Virus record (IMG/VR): IMGVR_UViG_3300002143_000235 | Span: 1 to 64,000 of that record | Strand: one strand, 5' to 3' | Length of the DNA: 64,000 nt | Part shown: piece after piece, positions 1 to 10,915 of the stretch | How the letters are laid out: every line of letters begins with the position of its first letter | Position numbering within the stretch: the stretch's first letter is position 1 | The notes under the pieces: generated by a model | The model's input: only the letters and a program-made list of their open reading frames with translations | The model's database searches: none | What the model was told of the DNA's origin: nothing | Translations under genes and position numbers: made by a program

Positions 1-992
1 TAAATATCTGAAATGGTTGCTTCTATGATCTCCAAACGACTTGTTACTGAGTTATAATTGATAGTTGCATTTTTAATTGTATCACAGCCTTTAATCACAT
101 CAAATAGTTTACTTTTAAACTTATCCCACATATTTTTTACTGTTGTATAGTCGTCAACTAAATCTACAACAATTTTCATTCCATCTATGTTTGCTAAAAA
201 TTCATCATATGTTTTATAACGTTTTAACCAATTAATATTATCATCAAGATAAGAAGAAAGTCTAAGCATATCTTCTTGAGTAAGTTCGTCTGTAATAGCT
301 GATCGTGTTTGTAAAATAAAATAATCCATGAGTGCAAGAATATCTTCACTCTTGTTATGATAGTCTGCTCCACCAATATAACGAAACTCAAGGTAATTCT
401 TCCATTTTTTTTGAAAATTTACACCGTAATATTTTGTATCATCAGGTAGTGAAAACCCACCCATAATAGAATTTATTGCACCATCCGTATCAGTAAAACC
501 TTCAAAAGGTACAATCCATTTAATTGATCTTGCATAAATATTATTACGACGTGATGGAAATTTCGAATAAATGAAATCTTCATCAAGTGATAATATCATC
601 TTAATAACATTCAAATCTTTGACTTCCATATCTTCTAAAGATATATTGATATGAACAGAACAATGCTCATCTGTATAACCATTTTTCTTAATAAATTCAA
701 GCATTTTAATGATTGTCATTCGTGCATCCATCCATGTCATTGGACCGGTAATTAACTCCACCATTTCAGATCCACCCGAAAAATCTGGTTCAATTTTAAA
801 TGTTTTATCGGTAACCTCAAATGCTGTATGGTAAGCATTAAAACCCCAAACTTCTACAGGTTGTAGAGCAATGTTTAACATCTCAACAGTTTTTACATAG
901 CTGTGATTAGAAAAAAACTCAAACTCTATACCTACCTTGGCTTTCGAAAGTTCTTTCCAAGCATTCATGAAACGACTGTTGAATGTATCCAT
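1..992 (-). CDS. Amidoligase (COOH-NH2 ligase, Amidoligase_2-like), 3' end runs off the window
   Basis: Hand translation from ATG at 992, open to the window edge: MDTFNSRF..KVGIEFEFF..KIEPDFSGGSEMVELITGP..CSVHINIS..KYYGVNF..LEFRYIGG; CATATATAC promoter motif at 997-1005. Missing from the ORF track because it is partial. Confidence 0.75.
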   Translation of the reverse strand, partial: MDTFNSRFMNAWKELSKAKVGIEFEFFSNHSYVKTVEMLNIALQPVEVWGFNAYHTAFEVTDKTFKIEPDFSGGSEMVELITGPMTWMDARMTIIKMLEFIKKNGYTDEHCSVHINISLEDMEVKDLNVIKMILSLDEDFIYSKFPSRRNNIYARSIKWIVPFEGFTDTDGAINSIMGGFSLPDDTKYYGVNFQKKWKNYLEFRYIGGADYHNKSEDILALMDYFILQTRSAITDELTQEDMLRLSSYLDDNINWLKRYKTYDEFLANIDGMKIVVDLVDDYTTVKNMWDKFKSKLFDVIKGCDTIKNATINYNSVTSRLEIIEATISDI

Positions 993-1032
993 ACCTGTAT
1001 ATATGAAAATGGGTAACCTAAGTCACCCATTT

Positions 1033-1278
1033 TTATTTTTTCAAATCTGTAAGCATCATTGCTCGATCTCTAATAGCATCTTTTAGACATGCATTAGCTG
1101 TATCTGAATCGAACTGAACCTTATCTATTGTTAATTTTCTATATAGTCTATTATAAACAAATGTATAATTTTCCTCTGCTGTATTTAAGTACTGTAACAA
1201 ATCTGTCGCAGTAACACCACTTTCAAGGTAATCATCAAGTACATAATTTATGCAGACATAGATTGCATCTGTATTCAT
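1033..1278 (-). CDS. hypothetical protein
   Basis: 81 aa ORF co-directional with neighbours, no motif recognised. Confidence 0.6.
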   Translation of the reverse strand: MNTDAIYVCINYVLDDYLESGVTATDLLQYLNTAEENYTFVYNRLYRKLTIDKVQFDSDTANACLKDAIRDRAMMLTDLKK

Positions 1279-1284
1279 ATAGAA

Positions 1285-1683
1285 TTAAGAAAATTTAGAA
1301 GCTAACATATGAAAAAACAATGCTTTTTCTTGGATTGACATATTTGTTGATTTTTTTTCAGCAAGATCAAAAATATCAACAACTTGTTGTTTAACGTCTT
1401 CTTCAGAATCTTTAGCAATAATTGGTTTTGTTTTAATTTCAACTGACTCAACAACAGCTTCAATATTTTGAATATCATAAGGTAGTTGCATTTTTAATGA
1501 TCCGTGTTGTAAATATGATGATGAATCAATCATATTTTCAAGATCTGACATACAATTATCAACATGATAACCAGCATCACCTTCGCTTGAAGCTTCAACA
1601 GAACCTTCAACAACTACATTAACTGTAAATTTATACGTTCTTAGAGATTCATTCTCATTTACGTGATCTGTAAATTTTTTCAT
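1285..1683 (-). CDS. hypothetical protein with capsid-targeting-like N-terminus (MKKFTDHVNENES)
   Basis: 132 aa ORF; leader resembles T4 CTS ending in VNE. Confidence 0.6.
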   Translation of the reverse strand: MKKFTDHVNENESLRTYKFTVNVVVEGSVEASSEGDAGYHVDNCMSDLENMIDSSSYLQHGSLKMQLPYDIQNIEAVVESVEIKTKPIIAKDSEEDVKQQVVDIFDLAEKKSTNMSIQEKALFFHMLASKFS

Positions 1684-2402
1684 TATTTATCTTCTATCTT
1701 ATTTATTATTTCTTCTAGTACTGATGAAACTTCTGCAGTAAGTTCAATAAAATACTCGTCATTACCATCATTTTTATAGTACATCAATTGTTGAATTTCA
1801 AAATCGACACTACCATCATTTTCTGCAGGATTTTCATTTGTTTCTGGTGATGTTTCCCAAAAATTAGCATGATAATTTGATGTAACAACTAATGATACTT
1901 TTAAATCATCATTTATAAACGATGTCTCTTGTGTTGTTGTTTTATCATTTTCAAGATCTTTTACATATGGAATTTCATTTGCATATACATACCAACCGTC
2001 TCCAAATTCAACTACTTCAAATGTTCTATTAGGAACATTTGAATAGTTTGTTGTACGTTTTGTACGTGGCATTTTATACGCTTTAGCAACAACATTAACA
2101 AATGCTTCAATATCTTTTAAATGTTTAAGAGCTTCTAATTGTGCCTGAGTATTATCATCACTAAATTGCTCAAATGTTTTAATAACATATTCACGCTTTT
2201 CAGAAATAAACTTTGGGCTTGTTTTAATAGCTGTGATAATTTCACCCATGTTATCCTGTATAAATGTTGCAGATAATTCAGCAGGTGTATTTACAGGATC
2301 AACAAAATAGTTTTGTAAGATTTCAATTGCCTCTAGTTTATCAATATTCATTCCTGCCATGTAATCTACATAGAGTTGAATATCATTATATCTTCCGTCC
2401 AT
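1683..2402 (-). CDS. hypothetical protein
   Basis: 239 aa ORF, TAATG overlap with next gene, ATATATAA motif upstream (2424-2433). Confidence 0.7.
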   Translation of the reverse strand: MDGRYNDIQLYVDYMAGMNIDKLEAIEILQNYFVDPVNTPAELSATFIQDNMGEIITAIKTSPKFISEKREYVIKTFEQFSDDNTQAQLEALKHLKDIEAFVNVVAKAYKMPRTKRTTNYSNVPNRTFEVVEFGDGWYVYANEIPYVKDLENDKTTTQETSFINDDLKVSLVVTSNYHANFWETSPETNENPAENDGSVDFEIQQLMYYKNDGNDEYFIELTAEVSSVLEEIINKIEDK

Positions 2403-2446
2403 CTAAGGAATTATTTCATTTTTTTATATATATCAAACAGTTGAAA

Positions 2447-3334
2447 TCATATATCGAATTCACCAAAATCCATATCATCAGTATCTTGCTTGAAAGCCCC
2501 CGTTGTATAAGATATAATTTCTGTTTCCTGTATATTATTTGAAATAATAGAAAATTTAGTCCAACCTTTTGTTTTACCATATACTGGACTATTACCTGTA
2601 TTAATTCGTTTATCTAAGGTTGATAGTGAAATATTAAATTCAACACAAAATATTTTAAGATCTGATCCATTTACTTTATAAATAAATCCATTAGGAGCAA
2701 TAAATATATGATCAATAGATCTACTACTTTTTCTACCTTTATTAGCTATACTAATTTTATTACGCATTTCAGATGAAATTATAGCACCATAACGTGGATT
2801 ATTTTTTCCTTTAACTTTAGCTGAAATTTTTTCTTTACTGTTATTAGTGTGTTGATGTCCTTTAAAATAACCACCAACAGAAACTTGATGTGCTGTACGT
2901 AATTCTTTTTGAATTTTAGCTTGTTCAATACCATAAATTTCTTCGTAAGTTTTACCGCTATGATTAGGTGGACGATTATCTAAACAAAAATTACACAAAG
3001 GTCCACGTTTTACTGTTTCACCATCTATTGTACCAATTGCTTGAATACTTATAGTTTCATTGTTATATGCATCAGTTTCATTATTTGTAAAATAAATCTT
3101 TTCAATTATAGGTTCTAATCCTAATGATTGTATTTTTTCAAATTTATGTTTAAGAATTGAATTTAGTTTTTTGTTATTATTTTTAAAATTTTTAAAATGC
3201 TCTAAATAACGTTTATCTTTTCCTTTACCTAAATAAATAGGTTCAAATAAAAAACACAAATTTATGTTTTCATAAGTATATTTTCCAGGTTTTCTAGGAT
3301 CTAAATAAACATAATTATACCACATATCCATCAA
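2447..3334 (-). CDS. GIY-YIG homing endonuclease with NUMOD3-like repeats, fused in frame to an NrdB C-terminal tail
   Basis: YVYLDPRKPGKY..PIYLGKGKDKRYLEH GIY-YIG variant; HTNNSKEKISAKVKGKNNPRYG NUMOD3-like; ends QETEIISYTTGAFKQDTDDMDFGEFDI. Confidence 0.8.
   Translation of the reverse strand: MMDMWYNYVYLDPRKPGKYTYENINLCFLFEPIYLGKGKDKRYLEHFKNFKNNNKKLNSILKHKFEKIQSLGLEPIIEKIYFTNNETDAYNNETISIQAIGTIDGETVKRGPLCNFCLDNRPPNHSGKTYEEIYGIEQAKIQKELRTAHQVSVGGYFKGHQHTNNSKEKISAKVKGKNNPRYGAIISSEMRNKISIANKGRKSSRSIDHIFIAPNGFIYKVNGSDLKIFCVEFNISLSTLDKRINTGNSPVYGKTKGWTKFSIISNNIQETEIISYTTGAFKQDTDDMDFGEFDI
2471..2520 (-). repeat. direct repeat copy 1 of nrdB 3' end (49/50 identical to 3740-3789)
   Basis: catatcatcagtatcttgcttgaaagcccccgttgtataagatataattt; single mismatch at 2498 vs 3767. 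Confidence 0.97.
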
Positions 3335-3713
3335 TATAATTTATTTGTGTATTTTCAATTTTTATATATCGACCATCTGTATGAATTGATGCAAATTCCG
3401 GTAATTTATAACCATAAATAAATAATTTATTAACAAATACACATGGTGTAATATCAATTATTTTATCATTCTGTAATATTACAGAATGTTGGATAGCTAA
3501 TAATTCAGTATTTTCTTCATTTGTTAATAAATAGTATCCTAAAATTTTTTCACTATCGTGATTATCATAAATATATTTATTAACATTATTATGACAATCA
3601 TTCATTATGTAATTTGAAGTTAATGGTATATCTAAAATTAAACAATTTTCTGGTTTCATCTTTATAATAAAAGATGAAACCAAAGGAACAGATATTTCAG
3701 CTATTTTCCACAT
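3315..3713 (-). CDS. papain/transglutaminase-like protein with Cys40-His76-Asp87 triad, candidate protein glutamine deamidase
   Basis: DCHNNV..ILGYYLL..AIQHSVIL..KIIDITP; starts 2 nt after the nrdB stop. Confidence 0.55.
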   Translation of the reverse strand: MWKIAEISVPLVSSFIIKMKPENCLILDIPLTSNYIMNDCHNNVNKYIYDNHDSEKILGYYLLTNEENTELLAIQHSVILQNDKIIDITPCVFVNKLFIYGYKLPEFASIHTDGRYIKIENTQINYIDGYVV

Positions 3714-3715
3714 TT

Positions 3716-4789
3716 TTAAATATTAAAATCGTCAAAAATCATATCATCAGTATCTTGCTTGAAAGCGCCCGTTGTATAAGATATAATTTGAGTTTGTTGT
3801 GGCGCTTCTTGAACAGCATTTCCACCAATCCAGTTACCAATCCATCCAATAGGATTTGCTACTTTTTCAAAAATTGGTTCCATTTTGATAATCTTCATAC
3901 GCTGATTTGTTAAATACTTCATATACTGAATAAGAATTTCAGCATTTAGACCAATCATTGAACCATCTTTAAACAAATATCTTGCCCAATCCATTTCTTC
4001 TTGAGCAGCGTCGCGGTACATTTGTGCTGTAATATCTTTACATTCAGCAACAACCTCATGAAAACCTTCACTAGCATCTTCAGCCATGATTTTCAAAATA
4101 AGTGATGAAAATCCCATATGCAAGTTCTCGTCACGTGCAATAAGTGATATGATCTTTGCATTACCTTCCATCTTCTTATTCTGTGCAAAAGCAAATGAGC
4201 AAGCGAATGAAACGTAAAAACGAATACCTTCAAGAATGTTGATAGATACAAGTGTTAAATATAATTTCTTTTTTTGATTGTGAATTGTATCATCTGGAAT
4301 TGCATTAATCAATTCATCATAATATTTTGTTACCGACATTGCACGATCAAGTATACGTTGATCAGTAAGAACTGTATCAAGTACTTCAGAAGGATTTGTA
4401 TAAATCTGTTTGATGATGTAGGTATAAGAATACGAGTGAAGAGTTTCCATGAATTCCCATGCTTTAGCAAACGCTTCAACTTCTGGATTTGTACAGTTCT
4501 CAAGTAAATGCGAAATTCCACGTGATTGAATTGTATCAAGCAAAATCTGGTATTTAAGGTTGAGTGTGAATACAACTTGTTGAAATTCAGGAAGTGAATT
4601 AAAGTCCATCTTATCCTTACTCAAGTTAATTTCTTCTGGTCTCCACATGTAAGCAAGTTGTTGCTTGAACATGTTGAAGATCTTTTCATATTTTGGATGA
4701 TCGTATCGTTGAACTCCCAAACCATGTGGGCCAAAGAACATCGGCTGTGAACGTGTGTCCTCAGTGCTTGTATTTATTATCGATTTCAT
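3716..4789 (-). CDS. nrdB: class Ia ribonucleotide reductase beta subunit with atypical APQQTQIISY tail
   Basis: WRPEE (W48), YQILLD (D84), ETLHSYSY (E115/H118/Y122), ILEGIRFYVSFA (E204), RDENLH (D237/E238/H241); tail Tyr356 equivalent present. Confidence 0.96.
   Translation of the reverse strand: MKSIINTSTEDTRSQPMFFGPHGLGVQRYDHPKYEKIFNMFKQQLAYMWRPEEINLSKDKMDFNSLPEFQQVVFTLNLKYQILLDTIQSRGISHLLENCTNPEVEAFAKAWEFMETLHSYSYTYIIKQIYTNPSEVLDTVLTDQRILDRAMSVTKYYDELINAIPDDTIHNQKKKLYLTLVSINILEGIRFYVSFACSFAFAQNKKMEGNAKIISLIARDENLHMGFSSLILKIMAEDASEGFHEVVAECKDITAQMYRDAAQEEMDWARYLFKDGSMIGLNAEILIQYMKYLTNQRMKIIKMEPIFEKVANPIGWIGNWIGGNAVQEAPQQTQIISYTTGAFKQDTDDMIFDDFNI
3740..3789 (-). repeat. direct repeat copy 2 of nrdB 3' end (within nrdB)
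   Basis: catatcatcagtatcttgcttgaaagcgcccgttgtataagatataattt. Confidence 0.97.
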
Positions 4790-4818
4790 ATCTTATTTGT
4801 GTTTTGATTATAGACTAG

Positions 4819-4850
4819 AATGCACTGAAAGTCTGACCTTCCAGTGCATT
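4819..4850. terminator. stem-loop between nrdA and nrdB
   Basis: aatgcactg-aaagtctgaccttc-cagtgcatt inverted repeat. Confidence 0.55.
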
Positions 4851-4858
4851 TATTGGTA

Positions 4859-7141
4859 TTAGATAGAGCAAGCACCTCCTGCGCATGTTTCATCTGTACC
4901 CATATCATCAAGATCATCAGATTTTTTATCATCTGTGTTGGCATAGTAGATTGTCTTCAATCCCCATTTGTAGCTGTTGAAAATGTCAGTCATTACCGTC
5001 TTCAATGAGATTCCCTCAGCTGAGTACTCATAGTAGTGGTTTGCACTAATGGATTGATCAATCCATTTCTGAATGAAACCAACAATTTTTGTATAACCAT
5101 CATTAGATCCCATTTCAAATGCTTTTTGATATTTGTTCTTCAATCGAACAGACTCAGGAGCAACTTGTTTTACAACACCTGTCTTAGAACGCTTTGTAGT
5201 GATGAGTGATCTAATTGGTTCAATACCATTTGTAGCATTTTGAACTACTGCTGATGATTCTGCTGGCATAATAGCTGATAATACAGAATTGCGTAAACCT
5301 GCACCGTATTGTAATTCATATCTTAATGCTTCCCAATCACAAGAATATGGTCGTTTACATAATTCATCAAGATTTTTATTATATCGATCAATTGGTAAAA
5401 CACCTTGTGAATATGTTGTTTTATCATACCATTCACAAGCACCGAATTCTTTTGCTAATTTGTTTGATGCTACTAATAATGAATATTGAATTCGTTCAAA
5501 TAATTCATCAACTTTTTCGAGAGCCTCTGGATCAGTATATTTTAAATCTTGTTTAGCAAGCCAATATGCAAAATTAGTAACACCAACTCCTAAACTACGG
5601 CGTTTTAACATTTTTCTTGATGCATTAACTGGATAATCTTGGTGTTCAATTATAAAATCAAGTAATCGTACACAATATTCAGAACATTTATCTAGTTCTT
5701 CCATTGATTTTATATTTCCTAAATTAAGTGCTGCAAGTACACATAAAGCTATTTCACCTTCAGATAAATGTTCAGTTGATGGATCGTGGTCGATGTCATA
5801 AATTGATGTTAATTCTTTTGTTACTAAACATATTTCTACACATAGATTTGACATACGAACACGTTCAATGAATGGTGAATTAGAATTAACATTATCTATA
5901 TTCATGATATAGATTCTTCCAGTTCCAACACGCTCTTGGGCTATTAAATTCATTAATTCACGTGCCTTAATCGTCTTACGTTTTATTTTTTTATCATTTT
6001 CATATTTTACATACAATTCATCGAATTCAGCATTATCACCAAAAGCATCGTATAAACCTGGAACATCTGCTGGTGAAAATAAAGCAACATCTTCATTTTT
6101 TATAAAACGTTGAAAAATTAATTTTGATAATTGAATACCATAATCCATGTGTCGTACACGATTATCATCAGTTCCTTTGTTGTTCTTCAATATAACGACA
6201 TCTTCAATTTCTTGGTGCCACCAAGGAAAATAAATTGTTGCAGATCCTTTACGAATTCCACCTTGTGAACATGAATGTGTAGAGCTCTGAAATTGTTTAA
6301 AAAATGGAACAACTCCAGTATGTATAATTTCACCTCCACGAATCTCACTTCCAACACCACGAATTCTACCGCCATTAAGTCCAATACCAGCACGCTTAGA
6401 AACATATTTAGTAATTGCAGTATTTATGTGACAAATACTATCCAATGAATCACCAGTTTCTAATAATACACATGAACTATACTGTCTATTTGGTGTACGT
6501 ACACCAGCCATGATCGGTGTAGGTAATGATATTTTTTGCTGTGATATGAGATCATATAACTCTTTTACATGTTTTAATCTTACATCATGATCATAATTCA
6601 TAAATACTGTCATCGCTATAAGCATAAAAGCATATTGTGGCGTTTCGTAAATTGTTTTAGTTTTTCTGTGCTGAACCAAATACTTATCCATCAATTGCTG
6701 TAATCCAGCGTGTGTGAAATCATAATCACGTTTGTGTTTCAGATACAAATTCAATACAGAAACTTCTTCTGTTGTGTATTTCTCAAGAATGATTGGATCA
6801 TATACCTCACGTTTAATATTGTTAACAATCACATTCCATAAATGTGGCATATCTGTTTTTACCTCGAATACTTCTTTACGAAGAAGATAGTTTAAAAGAT
6901 TACCAGCCACATATTGATAATTCGGTGTACGCTCAGATATCATATCAACAGCAGATGTAATAAGTACATTGTGTATTTGACTTGTTTTAATTCCTGGAAA
7001 AAATTGAATTTCAGCATTCATAGCCACATCTGATGCTGAAACACCAGCAAGACCTTCTGTTGCCCATAAGAGCACCTTATTAATTTTTTCCGCATCTAAT
7101 GGTGTTTTTTCACCGTTTCGTTTAGTCACTTTTAACTCCAT
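4859..7141 (-). CDS. nrdA: class Ia ribonucleotide reductase alpha subunit with ATP cone
   Basis: VTKRNG ATP cone, PTPIMAGVRT..SSCVL, SNLCVEI, AIMPAESS, GLKTIYY, C-terminal CAGGACSI. Confidence 0.97.
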   Translation of the reverse strand: MELKVTKRNGEKTPLDAEKINKVLLWATEGLAGVSASDVAMNAEIQFFPGIKTSQIHNVLITSAVDMISERTPNYQYVAGNLLNYLLRKEVFEVKTDMPHLWNVIVNNIKREVYDPIILEKYTTEEVSVLNLYLKHKRDYDFTHAGLQQLMDKYLVQHRKTKTIYETPQYAFMLIAMTVFMNYDHDVRLKHVKELYDLISQQKISLPTPIMAGVRTPNRQYSSCVLLETGDSLDSICHINTAITKYVSKRAGIGLNGGRIRGVGSEIRGGEIIHTGVVPFFKQFQSSTHSCSQGGIRKGSATIYFPWWHQEIEDVVILKNNKGTDDNRVRHMDYGIQLSKLIFQRFIKNEDVALFSPADVPGLYDAFGDNAEFDELYVKYENDKKIKRKTIKARELMNLIAQERVGTGRIYIMNIDNVNSNSPFIERVRMSNLCVEICLVTKELTSIYDIDHDPSTEHLSEGEIALCVLAALNLGNIKSMEELDKCSEYCVRLLDFIIEHQDYPVNASRKMLKRRSLGVGVTNFAYWLAKQDLKYTDPEALEKVDELFERIQYSLLVASNKLAKEFGACEWYDKTTYSQGVLPIDRYNKNLDELCKRPYSCDWEALRYELQYGAGLRNSVLSAIMPAESSAVVQNATNGIEPIRSLITTKRSKTGVVKQVAPESVRLKNKYQKAFEMGSNDGYTKIVGFIQKWIDQSISANHYYEYSAEGISLKTVMTDIFNSYKWGLKTIYYANTDDKKSDDLDDMGTDETCAGGACSI

Positions 7142-7420
7142 AGTTGTTATTATGTTTTAATTATTGTAGTCTTATATATGTGTTGAATTCCTCAAAGTTT
7201 GAGTTCACACCTCTGCATTATGTGGTCAAAAAATATTATTAGTATATTTCAATATCGAAAATTAAAAAGTGTGCCACATATGTAATACATGCATACGTAT
7301 TAGACAAATGCTATGGATTTTGATATATAATAAAAACATTTTAAAAAAATATTTTTCAAAAGCATACCACGGATTAAATATTTTACCTATATTCGTATCG
7401 TTCAATTAATAATTAAGATT

Positions 7421-8500
7421 ATGTCTCAGAAATCACAAGCATTAAATTTTCTCGCTTTTCTTGAAAAAGGAGCACATACTAAAAAAGAAGCAATTCAATT
7501 GTTTGTTAATAGTAATCCTGAAGCAAATGTGAATAACTTCAAGTTCTATATAAACGCTGCAATCAAATCTGGTGAATGGACTCCAAAAGTAGAAGAGGTA
7601 ACTTCATCAATTCTTGGTCTTCCAGCGATTAAAGAATCAAATGTTGTTCCATTTAAAGTTACAACAGTAGATCCAACAATTCTTCGTGATGAAAATTTTA
7701 AAGCATTCAAAACGGGAACAGCAGTCGATCGCATTGCTTCTAAACGTGATGGTGTCATGCCTGGTTGTGTATATGTAGTTCCTGGTGAATCAGGTGCAGG
7801 AAAAACAACAGTTTGTGTAAATATTGCTACTTATCTTAAAAGAAACAATCCTGGATTTACGGCTGGTTTTATTTCAGCTGAAATGGTTCTTGAAGATTGG
7901 ACTGATGAAGTATATGACAATAAGGATCTTGCAGATCTTGAAACAATTTTCATGCTCGATTACCTTGATGCTGATAACTACCTTGATGTACTTGTTCAAG
8001 CATTGAGTACATGGAATTTTATTGTTCTTGATTCGTTTGAAGTTATTCTTGATCAAATTAAAGAGATTAAAGGATGGACAGGAAAAAAAGCTGAAGCATA
8101 TCTCATCAATATTTTACGTCAAGCAGCTGATGAAAGTCGTTGTACAATTTTCGCGATTCAACATTTCACTAAAGGTGGTACTTATGCAGGATCAAGCAAA
8201 TTAAAACATATGCTTACAGGAATGTTGTATGTTCGTTTTGATGAAGGCGGTGAACGTTACATCGAGTTTGCTAAAAATCGCCGCGCTGGACATATGGTTA
8301 ACAAACGTCTATACTTTACAAAATGTAAAGAAACTGGTAAATTATTGTTTGACGGTAACAAATTTGAAATGCATGAAGCACAACGAGAATTTTCTGTGTC
8401 TGAGGTTAGTAAAATCAAAGAAGAAGAAAATGAATTTGATGCATTATTAGAGCAAGTAAAACTTCGCGAAACTGAAACTTCTGTATTAGTTGAAGCATAA
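7421..8500 (+). CDS. RadA/Sms-like RecA-family ATPase (no Zn finger or Lon domain)
   Basis: GESGAGKTT Walker A, IVLDSF Walker B, KGGTYAGSSKLKHML and KNRRAG RadA-like motifs. Confidence 0.75.
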   Translation: MSQKSQALNFLAFLEKGAHTKKEAIQLFVNSNPEANVNNFKFYINAAIKSGEWTPKVEEVTSSILGLPAIKESNVVPFKVTTVDPTILRDENFKAFKTGTAVDRIASKRDGVMPGCVYVVPGESGAGKTTVCVNIATYLKRNNPGFTAGFISAEMVLEDWTDEVYDNKDLADLETIFMLDYLDADNYLDVLVQALSTWNFIVLDSFEVILDQIKEIKGWTGKKAEAYLINILRQAADESRCTIFAIQHFTKGGTYAGSSKLKHMLTGMLYVRFDEGGERYIEFAKNRRAGHMVNKRLYFTKCKETGKLLFDGNKFEMHEAQREFSVSEVSKIKEEENEFDALLEQVKLRETETSVLVEA

Positions 8501-8506
8501 AAAGAA

Positions 8507-8545
8507 AAAAAATCACATCAAATGTTTTGTGTGTGATTTTTTTTT
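8507..8545 (+). terminator. intrinsic terminator
   Basis: aaaaaaaatcaca...tgtgatttttttt after the stop of 7421-8500. Confidence 0.55.
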
Positions 8546-8546
8546 C

Positions 8547-8554
8547 TATATTTG
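8547..8554 (+). promoter_or_regulatory. Bacteroidota-type -7 promoter element TATATTTG (also 12934+, 29677+, 49847-, 53585-, 61352-)
   Basis: matches TAnnTTTG consensus, each intergenic and upstream of a co-oriented gene. Confidence 0.7.
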
Positions 8555-8597
8555 TATTGTAAAACAAACAATTAAACACATTTAACGTATAAAAATT

Positions 8598-9740
8598 ATG
8601 AGAAGACACATTAGCCAACACGTAGAAGCAAAAACAGCAGAACAGTTCTCGACCTTCAAACAAGGAGCCATGAATAGCGGAGTTGTTCGCAAGGTTGTTT
8701 TTCTTAATGAAATTGTTATCGTAAATGAAACCACTATTATGGTTAAGGGTGCTAAATTTGGTATGCACGCTGAAGCATTCAAACAACTCGTAAAATTCAT
8801 TGGACTTGATAGTAAAATTCTTGAGTCTATTGAAAAATCTCTTGGTGAACAAGTTTCACAAAAATTGCTTGATGTTATGAAACATGCAATCATGAGTCGT
8901 GATATTGCAAAACAACAAGTTTGTCTTTTGGTAAATACAAAAACAATTGAAATTGTTGGAATCAAAAAACGTGCTGAGGGAGTTCTTTCAAATAATGCAT
9001 TCTTTGATTTGTTTGAACAAACAATGAACAACCATACAGGAATGCAAATCAAAGATATGTCAGTAACACCCTCTGGCGGAATTACAATCTCTGTAACAAA
9101 CACCAATTGGGAATTTAATGTACCTGGAGTTACTGATGAAGTATTTCAATCAGGTTTGACATTCATCAATATGCACGATAAAACTATTGTTGTTCCATTT
9201 AATGAGCGTTTGACTTGTACAAATGGTATGGTAACAGCAGAAAATGGTTTGGCTATTACATTGACTGATGATAAAGCCGGAAGTCTTGAGGCATTCTTCT
9301 CAGCAGTTACAAAAATTCAACAAAATTCTCAATTTGAGGATGAATTTAAAGCACAAATTCGCAAATTGATGTCTACTCAAGCATCGTATTCTGAAATGCT
9401 TATGTGTCATAAAGCATTGGTTTATAATGTCCAAGATGAAACAAATCTTGAAGTTGCTGAAACAATGGAATCATTCATTCCAGTACGTGAAATGAAACAA
9501 GCTTACCTTGCTAAGAATGTTGATCTCAATACATTAAAAGCATCAACACACAAAACAATTCGTACAATGCTTACAGGTTGGGAACTTGTTAACGCTCTTA
9601 CAGACGTTGCATCTCACCCTCAACGTGAAGGATTGAATTTGAAATACGGAAACTCAATCTTCGAACTTCAAAGAACTGCTGGTAGACTTGCATTCAAATC
9701 ACCGTTAGATCTTGAAAATCGAGTAATTCAACTTTTCTAA
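8598..9740 (+). CDS. DUF932-like protein
   Basis: VVPFNERLTCTNGMV resembles the R(L)xCxNG motif of DUF932. Confidence 0.5.
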   Translation: MRRHISQHVEAKTAEQFSTFKQGAMNSGVVRKVVFLNEIVIVNETTIMVKGAKFGMHAEAFKQLVKFIGLDSKILESIEKSLGEQVSQKLLDVMKHAIMSRDIAKQQVCLLVNTKTIEIVGIKKRAEGVLSNNAFFDLFEQTMNNHTGMQIKDMSVTPSGGITISVTNTNWEFNVPGVTDEVFQSGLTFINMHDKTIVVPFNERLTCTNGMVTAENGLAITLTDDKAGSLEAFFSAVTKIQQNSQFEDEFKAQIRKLMSTQASYSEMLMCHKALVYNVQDETNLEVAETMESFIPVREMKQAYLAKNVDLNTLKASTHKTIRTMLTGWELVNALTDVASHPQREGLNLKYGNSIFELQRTAGRLAFKSPLDLENRVIQLF

Positions 9741-9770
9741 CAATTATTAATTGAACACTTTTAATTGTTA

Positions 9771-9799
9771 AAACCCGGACCAATTGGTCCGGGTTTTTT
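9771..9799. terminator. bidirectional intrinsic terminator
   Basis: aaaacccggac-caattg-gtccgggtttttt. Confidence 0.85.
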
Positions 9800-9800
9800 A

Positions 9801-9810
9801 GTATATAAAA
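9801..9810 (+). promoter_or_regulatory. phage-specific TATATAA promoter motif (also 7322, 11320, 13385, 13622, 18490, 18960, 38600, 41760, 45105, 55304, 56892, 60192, 61942 on +; 997, 2424, 7173, 28237, 35581, 51659, 53545, 54223, 61904 on -)
   Basis: recurrent intergenic (C/G/A)ATATATA(A/C/G), mostly a few tens of nt before start codons, reminiscent of the T4 late TATAAATA. Confidence 0.7.
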
Positions 9811-9829
9811 AGAAACGATACATTTCTGA

Positions 9830-10915
9830 ATGTTTACTAATATACATCATTGGCTTCTTATTGAATCTTTTACACCATCAAAATTACGCAGTCCTGAATC
9901 AGTAGTTGCTCCAGAAAATCTAAAGGATATTGATTGGAAAGATTTACAGATTGTTGAACTTGGTGATGATGGAAATAATATGATCAATCTTGGTATTCAA
10001 TTACCAGGTGAAGACAAACCAAATGATGGTATTGTTCTTGATATTCAAATGATACATGATGAGTTATACCAACCACATATGTTCTTCTCAGCTGAAATGC
10101 AAGGTGGTGGACTCGGTTTCAAAGTCCTTCTTAAATTTATTCATGAGTTTGGACACTTCTATTCTGGTGACGGGCGCCAACAAAATAAGACACAGATTCC
10201 TGTAATTTTTGATAAGTTAAAAGCACAAGGTGATATTGATGCATATCGGTTACCACATGGTCATTTATTTATATTAAAAAGCAATCCTGACCGTAACTAT
10301 TTGGTCAATAAATACGTAAATAAAGAGAAAAAGATGATTACAACAATAGATGAGTTCTGCTCTGTAAATGAATCTAGTTCTGAACCAAGAATGATGTCTT
10401 TTATCATTCCTGAAAAGAAAAACTGGATCGAGCAGGGTGAAAATGTAGGTATACGTTTCATGGGAAAAACATATTGGATTAAAGAATCAGATCGTAAATT
10501 TTTTGAAGACAATATTGGTAACTCTATTGGATTTAAATATTTTCCTAGTGCAATGTATGTTGAGATGCCAACAGTATTGAAACAAAACATTGTAGCAAAG
10601 ACTGAATCATTTATATCTGAGTCTGATCTACGTAACTATTCAACATTAAATAAAGTCCATCATCTTTTAAAAAATGATAAAGTCACTGTTTATTATTTTG
10701 GACCACATGATACTCCTGATACAGCATTAAAATTTGATGCAAAAATTGTTACACCGCCATACATCTCACGTAACAATGTAGAAGCTGTAGTTAGATCCAT
10801 AGATCCAACAGGTGAAAAATACTTAGGTGACGGAGTTGTATGGTATAAACGTGGACGTTGGGTACATGTTGGAAAATGGAATACCCGAAAAGTAAATAAG
10901 AGAATACTACGATGA
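9830..10915 (+). CDS. putative head-internal polyprotein; GNAT-like first module, internal second leader MITTIDEF
   Basis: MFTNIHHWLLIES leader; QGGGLG motif; internal KKMITTIDEFCSVNESS and TESFISES. Confidence 0.6.
   Translation: MFTNIHHWLLIESFTPSKLRSPESVVAPENLKDIDWKDLQIVELGDDGNNMINLGIQLPGEDKPNDGIVLDIQMIHDELYQPHMFFSAEMQGGGLGFKVLLKFIHEFGHFYSGDGRQQNKTQIPVIFDKLKAQGDIDAYRLPHGHLFILKSNPDRNYLVNKYVNKEKKMITTIDEFCSVNESSSEPRMMSFIIPEKKNWIEQGENVGIRFMGKTYWIKESDRKFFEDNIGNSIGFKYFPSAMYVEMPTVLKQNIVAKTESFISESDLRNYSTLNKVHHLLKNDKVTVYYFGPHDTPDTALKFDAKIVTPPYISRNNVEAVVRSIDPTGEKYLGDGVVWYKRGRWVHVGKWNTRKVNKRILR

Follow-up and report, generated by a model that had tools for sequence, protein, structure and literature searches.

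Organization of the nrdAB locus

The analyzed window is a stretch of 64,000 nucleotides of jumbo phage DNA, and all coordinates refer to it. All genes of the locus described here lie on the minus strand. The gene nrdA (4859-7141) encodes the large subunit of a class Ia ribonucleotide reductase (RNR) with 760 amino acids. It is uninterrupted and matches the Pfam families ATP-cone, Ribonuc_red_lgN and Ribonuc_red_lgC with E-values down to 2.9e-130. The gene nrdB (3716-4789) encodes the small subunit with 357 amino acids (Pfam Ribonuc_red_sm, 4.6e-51) and its tail ends with APQQTQIISYTTGAFKQDTDDMIFDDFNI. In a residue-by-residue alignment to PDB chains of Escherichia coli NrdB, Q332 matches E350, Q334 matches E352 and Y338 matches Y356.

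The open reading frame ORF132 (3315-3713) encodes 132 amino acids and starts 2 nt after the nrdB stop codon. It is followed by a GIY-YIG homing endonuclease ORF (2447-3334) of 295 amino acids with a probable ATG at 3331, which combines a catalytic domain (Pfam LEM-3_GIY-YIG, 6.7e-9) with an accessory DNA-binding module (NUMOD3, 1.3e-7). Homologous ORFs of 294 amino acids are found in the same position in the related loci L034 and L042 (L numbers denote the loci compared in this study). The last 28 codons of the nuclease ORF are an old, resident nrdB tail read in frame (2447-2530, QETEIISYTTGAFKQDTDDMDFGEFDI plus stop). A 239-aa gene (1683-2402) marks the downstream edge of the locus.

The inserted cassette and the empty site

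The phage contig L001 was identified as the empty site. In a blastn comparison, window 1-2531 is 99.96% identical and window 3735-10789 is 99.55% identical to L001, with the tail region of L001 being matched twice. L001 lacks the 1269 bp at 2531-3799, which comprise a replacement nrdB tail, ORF132 and the body of the GIY-YIG gene. The insertion lies at the codons matching E. coli NrdB Q349-E352. The old tail of the window is identical to the tail of L001 (85/85 nt), whereas the new tail differs from it at about 15 positions. In L001 and in L210-213, which are also empty sites, nrdB is directly followed by the 239-aa gene. Such presence/absence polymorphism at one site between otherwise near-identical genomes is a feature of free-standing GIY-YIG homing endonuclease genes.

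The recoded block (3788-3799) reads CAA CAA ACT CAA (Q-Q-T-Q) in the window and CAG GAA ACA GAA (Q-E-T-E) in L001. Two G-to-C changes at first codon positions convert glutamate to glutamine, and the other two changes are synonymous. The same layout occurs in L034, L035 and L042. In L042 the two tails are identical over 81 nt except for the one G-to-C change that makes E into Q. A group I intron or other RNA across the insert and an intein were ruled out, as no Rfam match was obtained for 1500-5200 at E-values up to 1 and no intein domain was found in Pfam.

The direct repeat

The repeat observed in the earlier note is real. The stretches 2471-2520 (inside the old tail) and 3740-3789 (inside the functional, cassette-borne tail) are identical at 49 of 50 positions, the single mismatch being C at 2498 against G at 3767. 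They are spaced by 1269 nt, and the pair can be extended to 81 nt at 85% identity (2451-2531 against 3720-3800). Chance does not give such a pair in 64 kb. Both copies lie on the minus strand in nrdB-tail reading frames. The upstream copy reads APQ-Q-T-Q-IISYTTGAFKQDTDDM at the end of nrdB, and the downstream copy reads IQ-E-T-E-IISYTTGAFKQDTDDM at the end of the GIY-YIG ORF.

The codons that differ are the E350-equivalent (3794-3796 against 2525-2527) and the E352-equivalent (3788-3790 against 2519-2521). They directly abut the identical stretch on its gene-proximal side, as the note had stated. Upstream of the Gln349-equivalent codon the two copies share no homology, with the nrdB body on one side and the nuclease ORF on the other. 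Any crossover between the repeats would therefore delete ORF132 and the nuclease and leave nrdB coding for QQTQ, so that this part of the note's argument holds.

The note had named natural deletion derivatives as evidence that would speak against retention of the cassette, and had suggested read mapping for the deletion junction. No natural deletion product was found. L001 was considered as a repeat-mediated deletion derivative but was rejected, because it carries QETE and not QQTQ, and L210-213 are likewise un-invaded QETE alleles. Assembly of reads from four freshwater runs on window 1600-5000 gave only short contigs of low depth, none of which spans either repeat copy, so that a deletion junction could neither be seen nor excluded in these data. 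Searches of a cultured-phage collection, by similarity to the locus and at the protein level, returned no relative of the locus or of ORF132, and thus no isolate is at hand.

Association of glutamine-coded tails with ORF132

About 180 related loci were compared. Of the 82 glutamate-coded loci, 78 have neither gene, two have the nuclease only (L173, L199) and two have the nuclease and ORF132. Of the 98 glutamine-coded loci, 13 have ORF132 only and 85 have both genes, and none lacks an ORF132-family gene. Part of this association is hitch-hiking, since the Q tail and ORF132 are physically linked inside one mobile unit, and the loci are not phylogenetically independent, although they cover at least nine NrdB backgrounds. 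In samples drawn by NrdB similarity alone, 23 and 58 glutamate-coded loci have no ORF132-family gene, whereas 4 and 5 glutamine-coded loci all have one. All 74 family loci with upstream sequence sit just after nrdB. The glutamine codons track ORF132 and not the nuclease, the gene of which lies between them in the marine clade.

At least seven loci lost the nuclease but kept ORF132. Nuclease-less derivatives are L036/37 (with a 31-codon nuclease remnant), L038, L043-46, L057 and L104, and ORF132 is under purifying selection there (dN/dS 0.09-0.18). The glutamine codons vary between CAA and CAG among Q alleles without reverting. The changes at these codons are always E-to-Q, and D-to-Q in L012-type tails. 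No other residue appears, although synonymous GAA-to-GAG changes were available. Four lineages (L008, L038, L039, L042) change only the E352-equivalent and keep E350.

The duplicated tail is not a conserved part of the system. Most ORF132-family loci, namely the marine clade, L043-46 and L104, have no old tail at all, and others (L036, L057, L089) keep only fragments.

The ORF132 family

ORF132 belongs to a small uncharacterized family with 27 representatives in 1.8 billion proteins. Neither Pfam, PHROGs nor PDB sequence searches gave a match. In an alignment of 35 sequences, nine residues are invariant (C40, H41, N43, Y61, H76, S77, D87, I88 and T89). The AF2 model (pLDDT 90.5) places C40 at the N-terminus of a helix (40-50) and H76 and D87 on the following hairpin (strands 71-81 and 84-86), which is a papain/transglutaminase-like order of Cys, His and Asp.

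Similarity to characterized enzymes of this type is weak. VIA structure comparison gave Z values of 2.5-3.0 to PeiP, TglA, arylamine N-acetyltransferase and staphopain, and a Transglut_core cluster was matched with a TM of 0.42 over 68 residues. These hits are thematically consistent but below significance (Z 3.1 or less), and they leave the membership of ORF132 in this enzyme class undecided. Foldseek against PDB and Swiss-Prot models found nothing significant, and AFDB clusters gave only uncharacterized proteins. A feature search in a protein atlas pointed weakly to YunG-like families (score 0.85-0.87, below the threshold for a lead) and was not pursued. A complex prediction of ORF132 with NrdB residues 312-357 gave no answer (score 0.00), which counts neither for nor against an interaction. 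The pI within the family ranges from 4.6 to 9.5, so that it is not uniformly basic, and the ORF132 of the window is acidic.

Interpretation

The comparisons establish that 2531-3799 is a mobile homing-endonuclease cassette inserted into the 3′ end of nrdB at the codons for the QExE motif of the beta tail. It carries its own replacement tail, so nrdB stays intact, and the resident tail is pushed downstream to the end of the GIY-YIG ORF, which creates the direct repeat. They also establish that the replacement tail differs from the resident tail mainly by the G-to-C changes that turn Glu into Gln codons, and that homology between the tails begins only at these codons. What follows is inferred. 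The E-to-Q changes would destroy the target of the nuclease and give self-immunity; this rests on the four nucleotide differences at 3790-3797 only, as cleavage of either allele was not assayed. ORF132 would be a Cys-His-Asp enzyme acting on the NrdB tail, most likely deamidating Gln back to Glu, so that the mature protein is normal. Once nrdB is Q-coded, ORF132 could not be lost without crippling the phage RNR, which would explain why the nuclease decays in several lineages while ORF132 and the Q codons persist. In this view, the repeat geometry is a consequence of the design and not a separately evolved lock. The confidence in this explanation as a whole is about even.

In favor of this explanation, E350 is described as conserved and essential (PMC8463856, PMC9248007) and its substitution disrupts radical transfer (PMC11482829); these statements rest on papers citing the study of E350 mutants by Ravichandran et al. 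(2017). However, E350 is not universal in other RNR subclasses (PMC8463856), and E352, the only one of the two positions changed in four lineages, is not known to be essential. Moreover, L173 and L199 have the nuclease with Glu codons and no ORF132, so immunity can be had without Q. There is no biochemical evidence for deamidation or for inactivity of Q-coded NrdB, and neither conversion of Gln to Glu nor the fitness of carriers without ORF132 was measured here. Loss of the phage RNR may only lower fitness, because host RNR can supply dNTPs, as in T4. The interpretation in the earlier note, that recombination would leave a presumably dead RNR and that the duplication thereby selects for retention, is thus only partly supported. 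The natural data fit a dependence of Q-coded nrdB on the gene which the note had called an editor, but any addiction rests on the pairing of Q codons with ORF132 and not on the repeat.

An alternative, which appears possible but less likely, is that the Q codons serve immunity only, that the RNR of this phage group tolerates Gln at these positions and that ORF132 has another role, such as a homing accessory, target recognition or something unrelated. The repeat would then be a plain target-site duplication, and recombination across it would give a viable phage without addiction. The co-transfer of the Q tail and ORF132 as one unit, the lineages keeping E350 and the lack of conservation of E350 in other subclasses are in line with this. 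In addition, ORF132 is fused to a Vsr-like/DUF723 nuclease in L008, L012, L016 and L024 and is paired with GIY-YIG elsewhere, which resembles a shared targeting module. On the other hand, all 80 cassette-free loci keep Glu at both positions, so Gln is not neutral there, and the exclusive change to Gln, the purifying selection on ORF132 where the nuclease is gone and the absence of Q alleles without ORF132 speak against it, as does the wide variation in pI. The nuclease, in contrast to ORF132-free Q alleles, does occur with E alleles.

Two further readings seem improbable. The strong form of the note's claim is that the placement of the repeat is itself an evolved anti-excision device maintained by selection. 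The same geometry occurs in the window, L034, L042 and L039, and the high similarity of the tails suggests ongoing conversion that never erases the Q codons. However, the geometry follows automatically from a cassette that carries a replacement tail and inserts at the recoded codons, and the duplication decays and is not needed for persistence. Alternatively, ORF132 could compensate for the Q-coded tail without deamidating it, either as a transglutaminase-type enzyme cross-linking the tail Gln to NrdA or as a non-catalytic factor that helps the altered tail to dock. Transglutaminases share the Cys-His-Asp arrangement and also act on Gln, and the tight linkage to Q-coded tails is equally compatible. 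Against this, cross-linking would block the subunit dissociation required for turnover (PMC8463856), and nine invariant polar residues argue for catalysis rather than mere binding.

In its furthest form, which is rated slightly less likely than not, the inference describes a natural cleave-and-rescue drive locked in by protein editing, in which a homing element recodes essential Glu codons of the RNR beta tail and carries a dedicated, previously undescribed Cys-His-Asp protein deamidase that restores Glu after translation. The host gene would become dependent on the element, and this would explain the persistence of editor and Q codons in many freshwater and marine phage lineages despite decay of the nuclease. 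If the inference holds, this is a new way for selfish DNA to become indispensable, by changing the genotype of an essential residue and supplying the enzyme that restores the phenotype. It would add a new family of protein-modifying enzymes as well as a natural substrate in one of the best-studied radical enzymes, at the very residue (E350) whose role in gating radical transfer is still debated. About a hundred phage nrdB genes that look like E350Q mutants may encode normal enzymes, which is a caution for annotation. Even if editing is wrong, naturally tolerated Gln at E350/E352 would be of interest to RNR biochemistry.

Comparison with known systems

Gene-encoded Gln that is deamidated to a functional Glu occurs in the chemoreceptor QEQE sites with CheB/CheD and in Pup Gln64 with Dop, where a dedicated amidase belongs to the same system. 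In the present case this is only inferred, the enzyme family is uncharacterized and not detectably related to CheD, CheB or Dop, and the arrangement is part of a selfish mobile element. In toxin-antidote and cleave-and-rescue gene drives, and in addiction by restriction-modification or TA modules, a nuclease attacks the wild-type allele of an important gene, the element carries a cleavage-resistant rescue copy and loss of part of the element is penalized. Here, the rescue would work at the protein level through a recoded residue plus an editor, no toxin is involved and the penalty is loss of RNR function. The locus would be a natural counterpart to engineered cleave-and-rescue drives.

Phage RNR genes are also targeted by insertions in which a GIY-YIG or HNH nuclease shows presence/absence polymorphism between close relatives and the function of the host gene is preserved. 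In the cassette there is no intron, intein or split gene; nrdB is kept whole by a carried replacement tail and essential codons are recoded.

Mobile ORF elements (mORFs) with a replacement C-terminus are described in fungal mitochondria, in atp6 of Allomyces macrogynus and in atp6, atp9, cox2 and nad3 of Glomus (PMC3630166). There, as in the window, an endonuclease ORF is inserted in the 3′ part of a conserved gene and brings a foreign in-frame C-terminus, while the native C-terminus is left downstream, identical to that of the un-invaded relative and sometimes in phase with the ORF. The cassette differs in lying in a phage nrdB gene, in the targeted Glu-to-Gln changes at functionally critical residues instead of general divergence, and in the second, conserved enzyme-like gene of the ORF132 family that always comes along. 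Furthermore, its two tails stay nearly identical, against 64-81% identity in Glomus.

Architecture of the nrdB locus

All genes in window 1-7200 are located on the minus strand. These are nrdA (4859-7141), nrdB (3716-4789), a gene of unknown function encoding 132 amino acids (ORF132, 3315-3713), a 295-aa ORF with GIY-YIG and NUMOD3 domains (2447-3334) and a gene encoding 239 amino acids (1683-2402). The direct repeat described in the earlier note was confirmed, as window 2471-2520 and 3740-3789 agree at 49 of 50 bases and lie 1269 nt apart. In the orientation of the gene both copies encode IISYTTGAFKQDTDDM. In nrdB this stretch is preceded by APQ-Q-T-Q and followed by IFDDFNI and a stop codon, whereas at the end of the nuclease ORF it is preceded by NNIQ-E-T-E and followed by DFGEFDI and a stop codon. 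The identical stretch starts at the second base of the last Q/E codon, and upstream of the Gln codon that begins the motif the two copies are unrelated.

A contig from another metagenome (L001) is 99.96% identical to window 1-2531 and 99.55% identical to window 3735-10789, but lacks the 1269 bp in between. In this contig nrdB ends with QETEIISYTTGAFKQDTDDMDFGEFDI and is followed directly by the gene encoding 239 amino acids. The downstream ("old") tail of the window is identical in DNA to the tail of L001 over all 85 nt. The tail which is now attached to nrdB differs by changes from Glu to Gln at positions 3796 and 3790, by synonymous changes at positions 3803, 3797, 3791 and 3767, and at nine further positions in the last 24 nt. 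Therefore, the region 2531-3799 is an inserted cassette consisting of three parts, a replacement nrdB tail, ORF132 and the nuclease. Four more samples hold a 94%-identical NrdB, which is also cassette-free and QETE-coded. No RNA family, and hence no group I intron, matches the insert.

This architecture, in which an endonuclease ORF brings a replacement C-terminus and leaves the native one downstream, is known from fungal mitochondria, e.g., from Allomyces atp6 and from Glomus atp6, atp9, cox2 and nad3 (PMC3630166). A literature search found no description of it in phage nrdB. The last ORF of the cassette repeatedly reads in frame into the old nrdB tail and uses its stop codon. This was observed in the window (2447-2530) and in the cassette loci L034 (6232-6315), L042 (5783-5866), L039 (4325-4411), L055 (about 3280-3369), L041, L057 and L089, with the last ORF being the nuclease in some loci and the ORF132 homolog in others. 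As the NrdB tail is the NrdA-binding peptide, these proteins might be recruited to, or compete at, NrdA, but this could also be just economy of the junction. Additionally, a 15-bp hairpin is located inside the first 20 codons of ORF132 (3649-3684, minus strand), just after the nrdB stop codon, which may affect translational coupling or transcript stability.

The nrdA gene of the window is uninterrupted. In relatives, however, nrdA is interrupted by an intein-like split with a GIY-YIG ORF between the halves (L034 362-3883, L036 5523-9079 and L047 1-3454), and the RNR genes of this phage group are hit by several different mobile elements.

Recoded residues of the NrdB tail

The alignment to E. 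coli NrdB places Q332 of the window on E350, Q334 on E352 and Y338 on Y356. E350 and Y356 are described as the two tail residues essential for turnover (PMC8463856), and E350 is called conserved and essential (PMC9248007). Its substitution disrupts radical transfer, and it positions the tail in the active complex (PMC11482829). Near the extreme C-terminus (window 3716-3739 compared to 2447-2470) the new tails also carry an acid-to-amide change at the third-to-last residue, which is FDI to FNI in the window and FDF to FNF in L034. This may be chance or a further site of the same logic.

The pattern of the changes varies between lineages and comprises QQTQ, QQTE, QQEQ, QEEQ, QEVQ, QESQ, QETQ..Q and QQTQ.Q, but the change is always from an acid to Gln. 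In L042 the two tails are identical over 81 nt except for the single G-to-C change that makes Glu into Gln. The Q codons drift between CAA and CAG without reverting.

Association of Q-coded tails with the ORF132 family

ORF132 has no match in Pfam or PHROG. It belongs to a small family with 27 representatives among 1.8 billion proteins, plus C-terminal domains of 541-aa Vsr-like/DUF723 nuclease fusions. In this related clade (L008 7120-8745, L012 7120-8745, L016 7119-8747 and L024 7120-8298) the ORF132 domain is the C-terminus of a protein of 392-541 amino acids with DUF723/DUF4379 zinc-finger repeats and a DUF559/DUF2726 (Vsr-like) nuclease region. Thus, the same small domain is paired with two unrelated nuclease types at the same nrdB site. 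Every family member whose upstream sequence is available lies just after nrdB, namely all 74 such IMG/VR loci plus those found through protein look-ups.

In samples chosen by NrdB similarity alone, 23 loci with QExE in the clade of the window have no family member within 6 kb, whereas the 4 loci with Q substitutions all have one. In a marine clade, 58 QETEVESY loci have none and the 5 QQTQVQSY loci all have one. Pooled over all loci, Glu-coded tails were found 78 times with neither the nuclease nor a member of the ORF132 family, twice with the nuclease only and twice with both. Gln-coded tails were found 13 times with an ORF132 family member but without the nuclease, 85 times with both, and 0 times without an ORF132 family member, irrespective of the nuclease. 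These loci include some contigs retrieved twice and are not phylogenetically independent, but they cover at least nine different NrdB backgrounds. Some of the 13 nuclease-less loci are contigs which end inside ORF132, so that their nuclease status is unknown.

The Q codons track ORF132 and not the nuclease. In the marine clade the nuclease gene lies between the Q codons and ORF132, and the loci with only the nuclease (L173, L199) carry Glu. At least seven loci in five lineages have lost the nuclease but keep an intact ORF132 next to a Q-coded tail, which are L036/37, L038, L043-46, L057 and L104. In this situation ORF132 shows a dN/dS of 0.09-0.18. The decay of the nuclease is visible in close relatives, as it is split by a frameshift in L035 (2523-3408) and reduced in L036/L037 (L036 5401-5496) to a 31-codon remnant fused to a piece of the old tail, while ORF132 and the Q codons stay intact in both. 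The loci L081 and L115 (Glu-coded nrdB, GIY-YIG and ORF132 homolog) as well as L173 and L199 (Glu-coded nrdB and GIY-YIG only) are rare intermediate states. They suggest an order of events with the nuclease first, then ORF132, then the E-to-Q recoding and then the decay of the nuclease, and they also show that the nuclease can reside next to a Glu-coded tail.

Predicted properties of ORF132

Thirty-five sequences of the family share the invariant residues C40, H41, N43, Y61, H76, S77, D87, I88 and T89. The AlphaFold model is confident (pLDDT 90.5) and puts C40 at the N-terminus of a helix and H76 and D87 on the following hairpin, which is the order seen in papain-, NlpC/P60-, transglutaminase- and arylamine-acetyltransferase-type enzymes. 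Fold searches gave no significant match. The weak ones share this theme, with PeiP, TglA, NAT and staphopain at Z 2.5-3.0 and a Transglut_core cluster at TM 0.42 over 68 residues with an rmsd of 2.4, whereas good matches are only to uncharacterised proteins. The pI of the family ranges from 4.6 to 9.5, which does not suggest a conserved DNA binder.

Enzymes of this kind act on the side-chain amide of Gln. Gene-encoded Gln that is turned into the functional Glu by an amidase has precedents in chemoreceptors and in Pup. A Gln-to-Glu deamidase of the NrdB tail is therefore the most economical reading for ORF132, but it is an inference.

Consequences of the repeat geometry

The earlier note proposed that recombination between the repeats would delete the editor and nuclease genes but keep the QQTQ allele, presumably giving a dead RNR, and that the duplication would thereby select for retention of the cassette. 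This interpretation is partly supported. The geometry is correct, because the upstream edge of the cassette is at the recoded codons and a crossover between the tails can only fall downstream of them. The product would be nrdB QQTQ joined to the old extreme end, without ORF132 or the nuclease. If Q-coded NrdB needs ORF132, such deletions are counter-selected, and the comparative data agree with that, as Q is never found without ORF132 and the nuclease is lost while ORF132 is kept. However, the inactivity of Q-coded NrdB, the editing itself and the fitness cost are all untested, and host RNR may buffer the loss. The geometry is moreover an automatic by-product of a replacement-tail cassette which inserts at its own recoded target. 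The duplication is not conserved, since most family loci have no old tail and others keep only scraps. The lock, if real, is the pair of Q codons and ORF132 and not the repeat.

Naturally occurring deletion derivatives had been named as evidence that would speak against such a retention, and no natural genome with the predicted deletion product was found. The 90% cluster of the window's NrdB holds only the window allele and two QETE alleles. This is only a weak test, as public sequencing runs hold the phage only as thin, short contigs, none of which spans a repeat copy. Taken together, the analysis demonstrates the architecture of the cassette and its recent mobility, whereas the dependence of Q-coded nrdB on ORF132 is strongly suggested by the comparative data and its mechanism is inferred. 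The idea that the repeat geometry is itself a retention device is not supported beyond being a consequence of the design.

The near-identity of the middle 50 nt, set against diverged flanks, suggests either conversion between the two copies or a mosaic homing product, and the data did not separate these two possibilities. The few differences between the window and the empty-site genome L001 are clustered, with 9 in 70 nt at the 5′ end of nrdB (window 4685-4754) and 10 in 110 nt near 7.5 kb (7492-7603), whereas 880 nt next to the cassette are identical. These clusters look like small mosaic recombination patches unrelated to a co-conversion tract.
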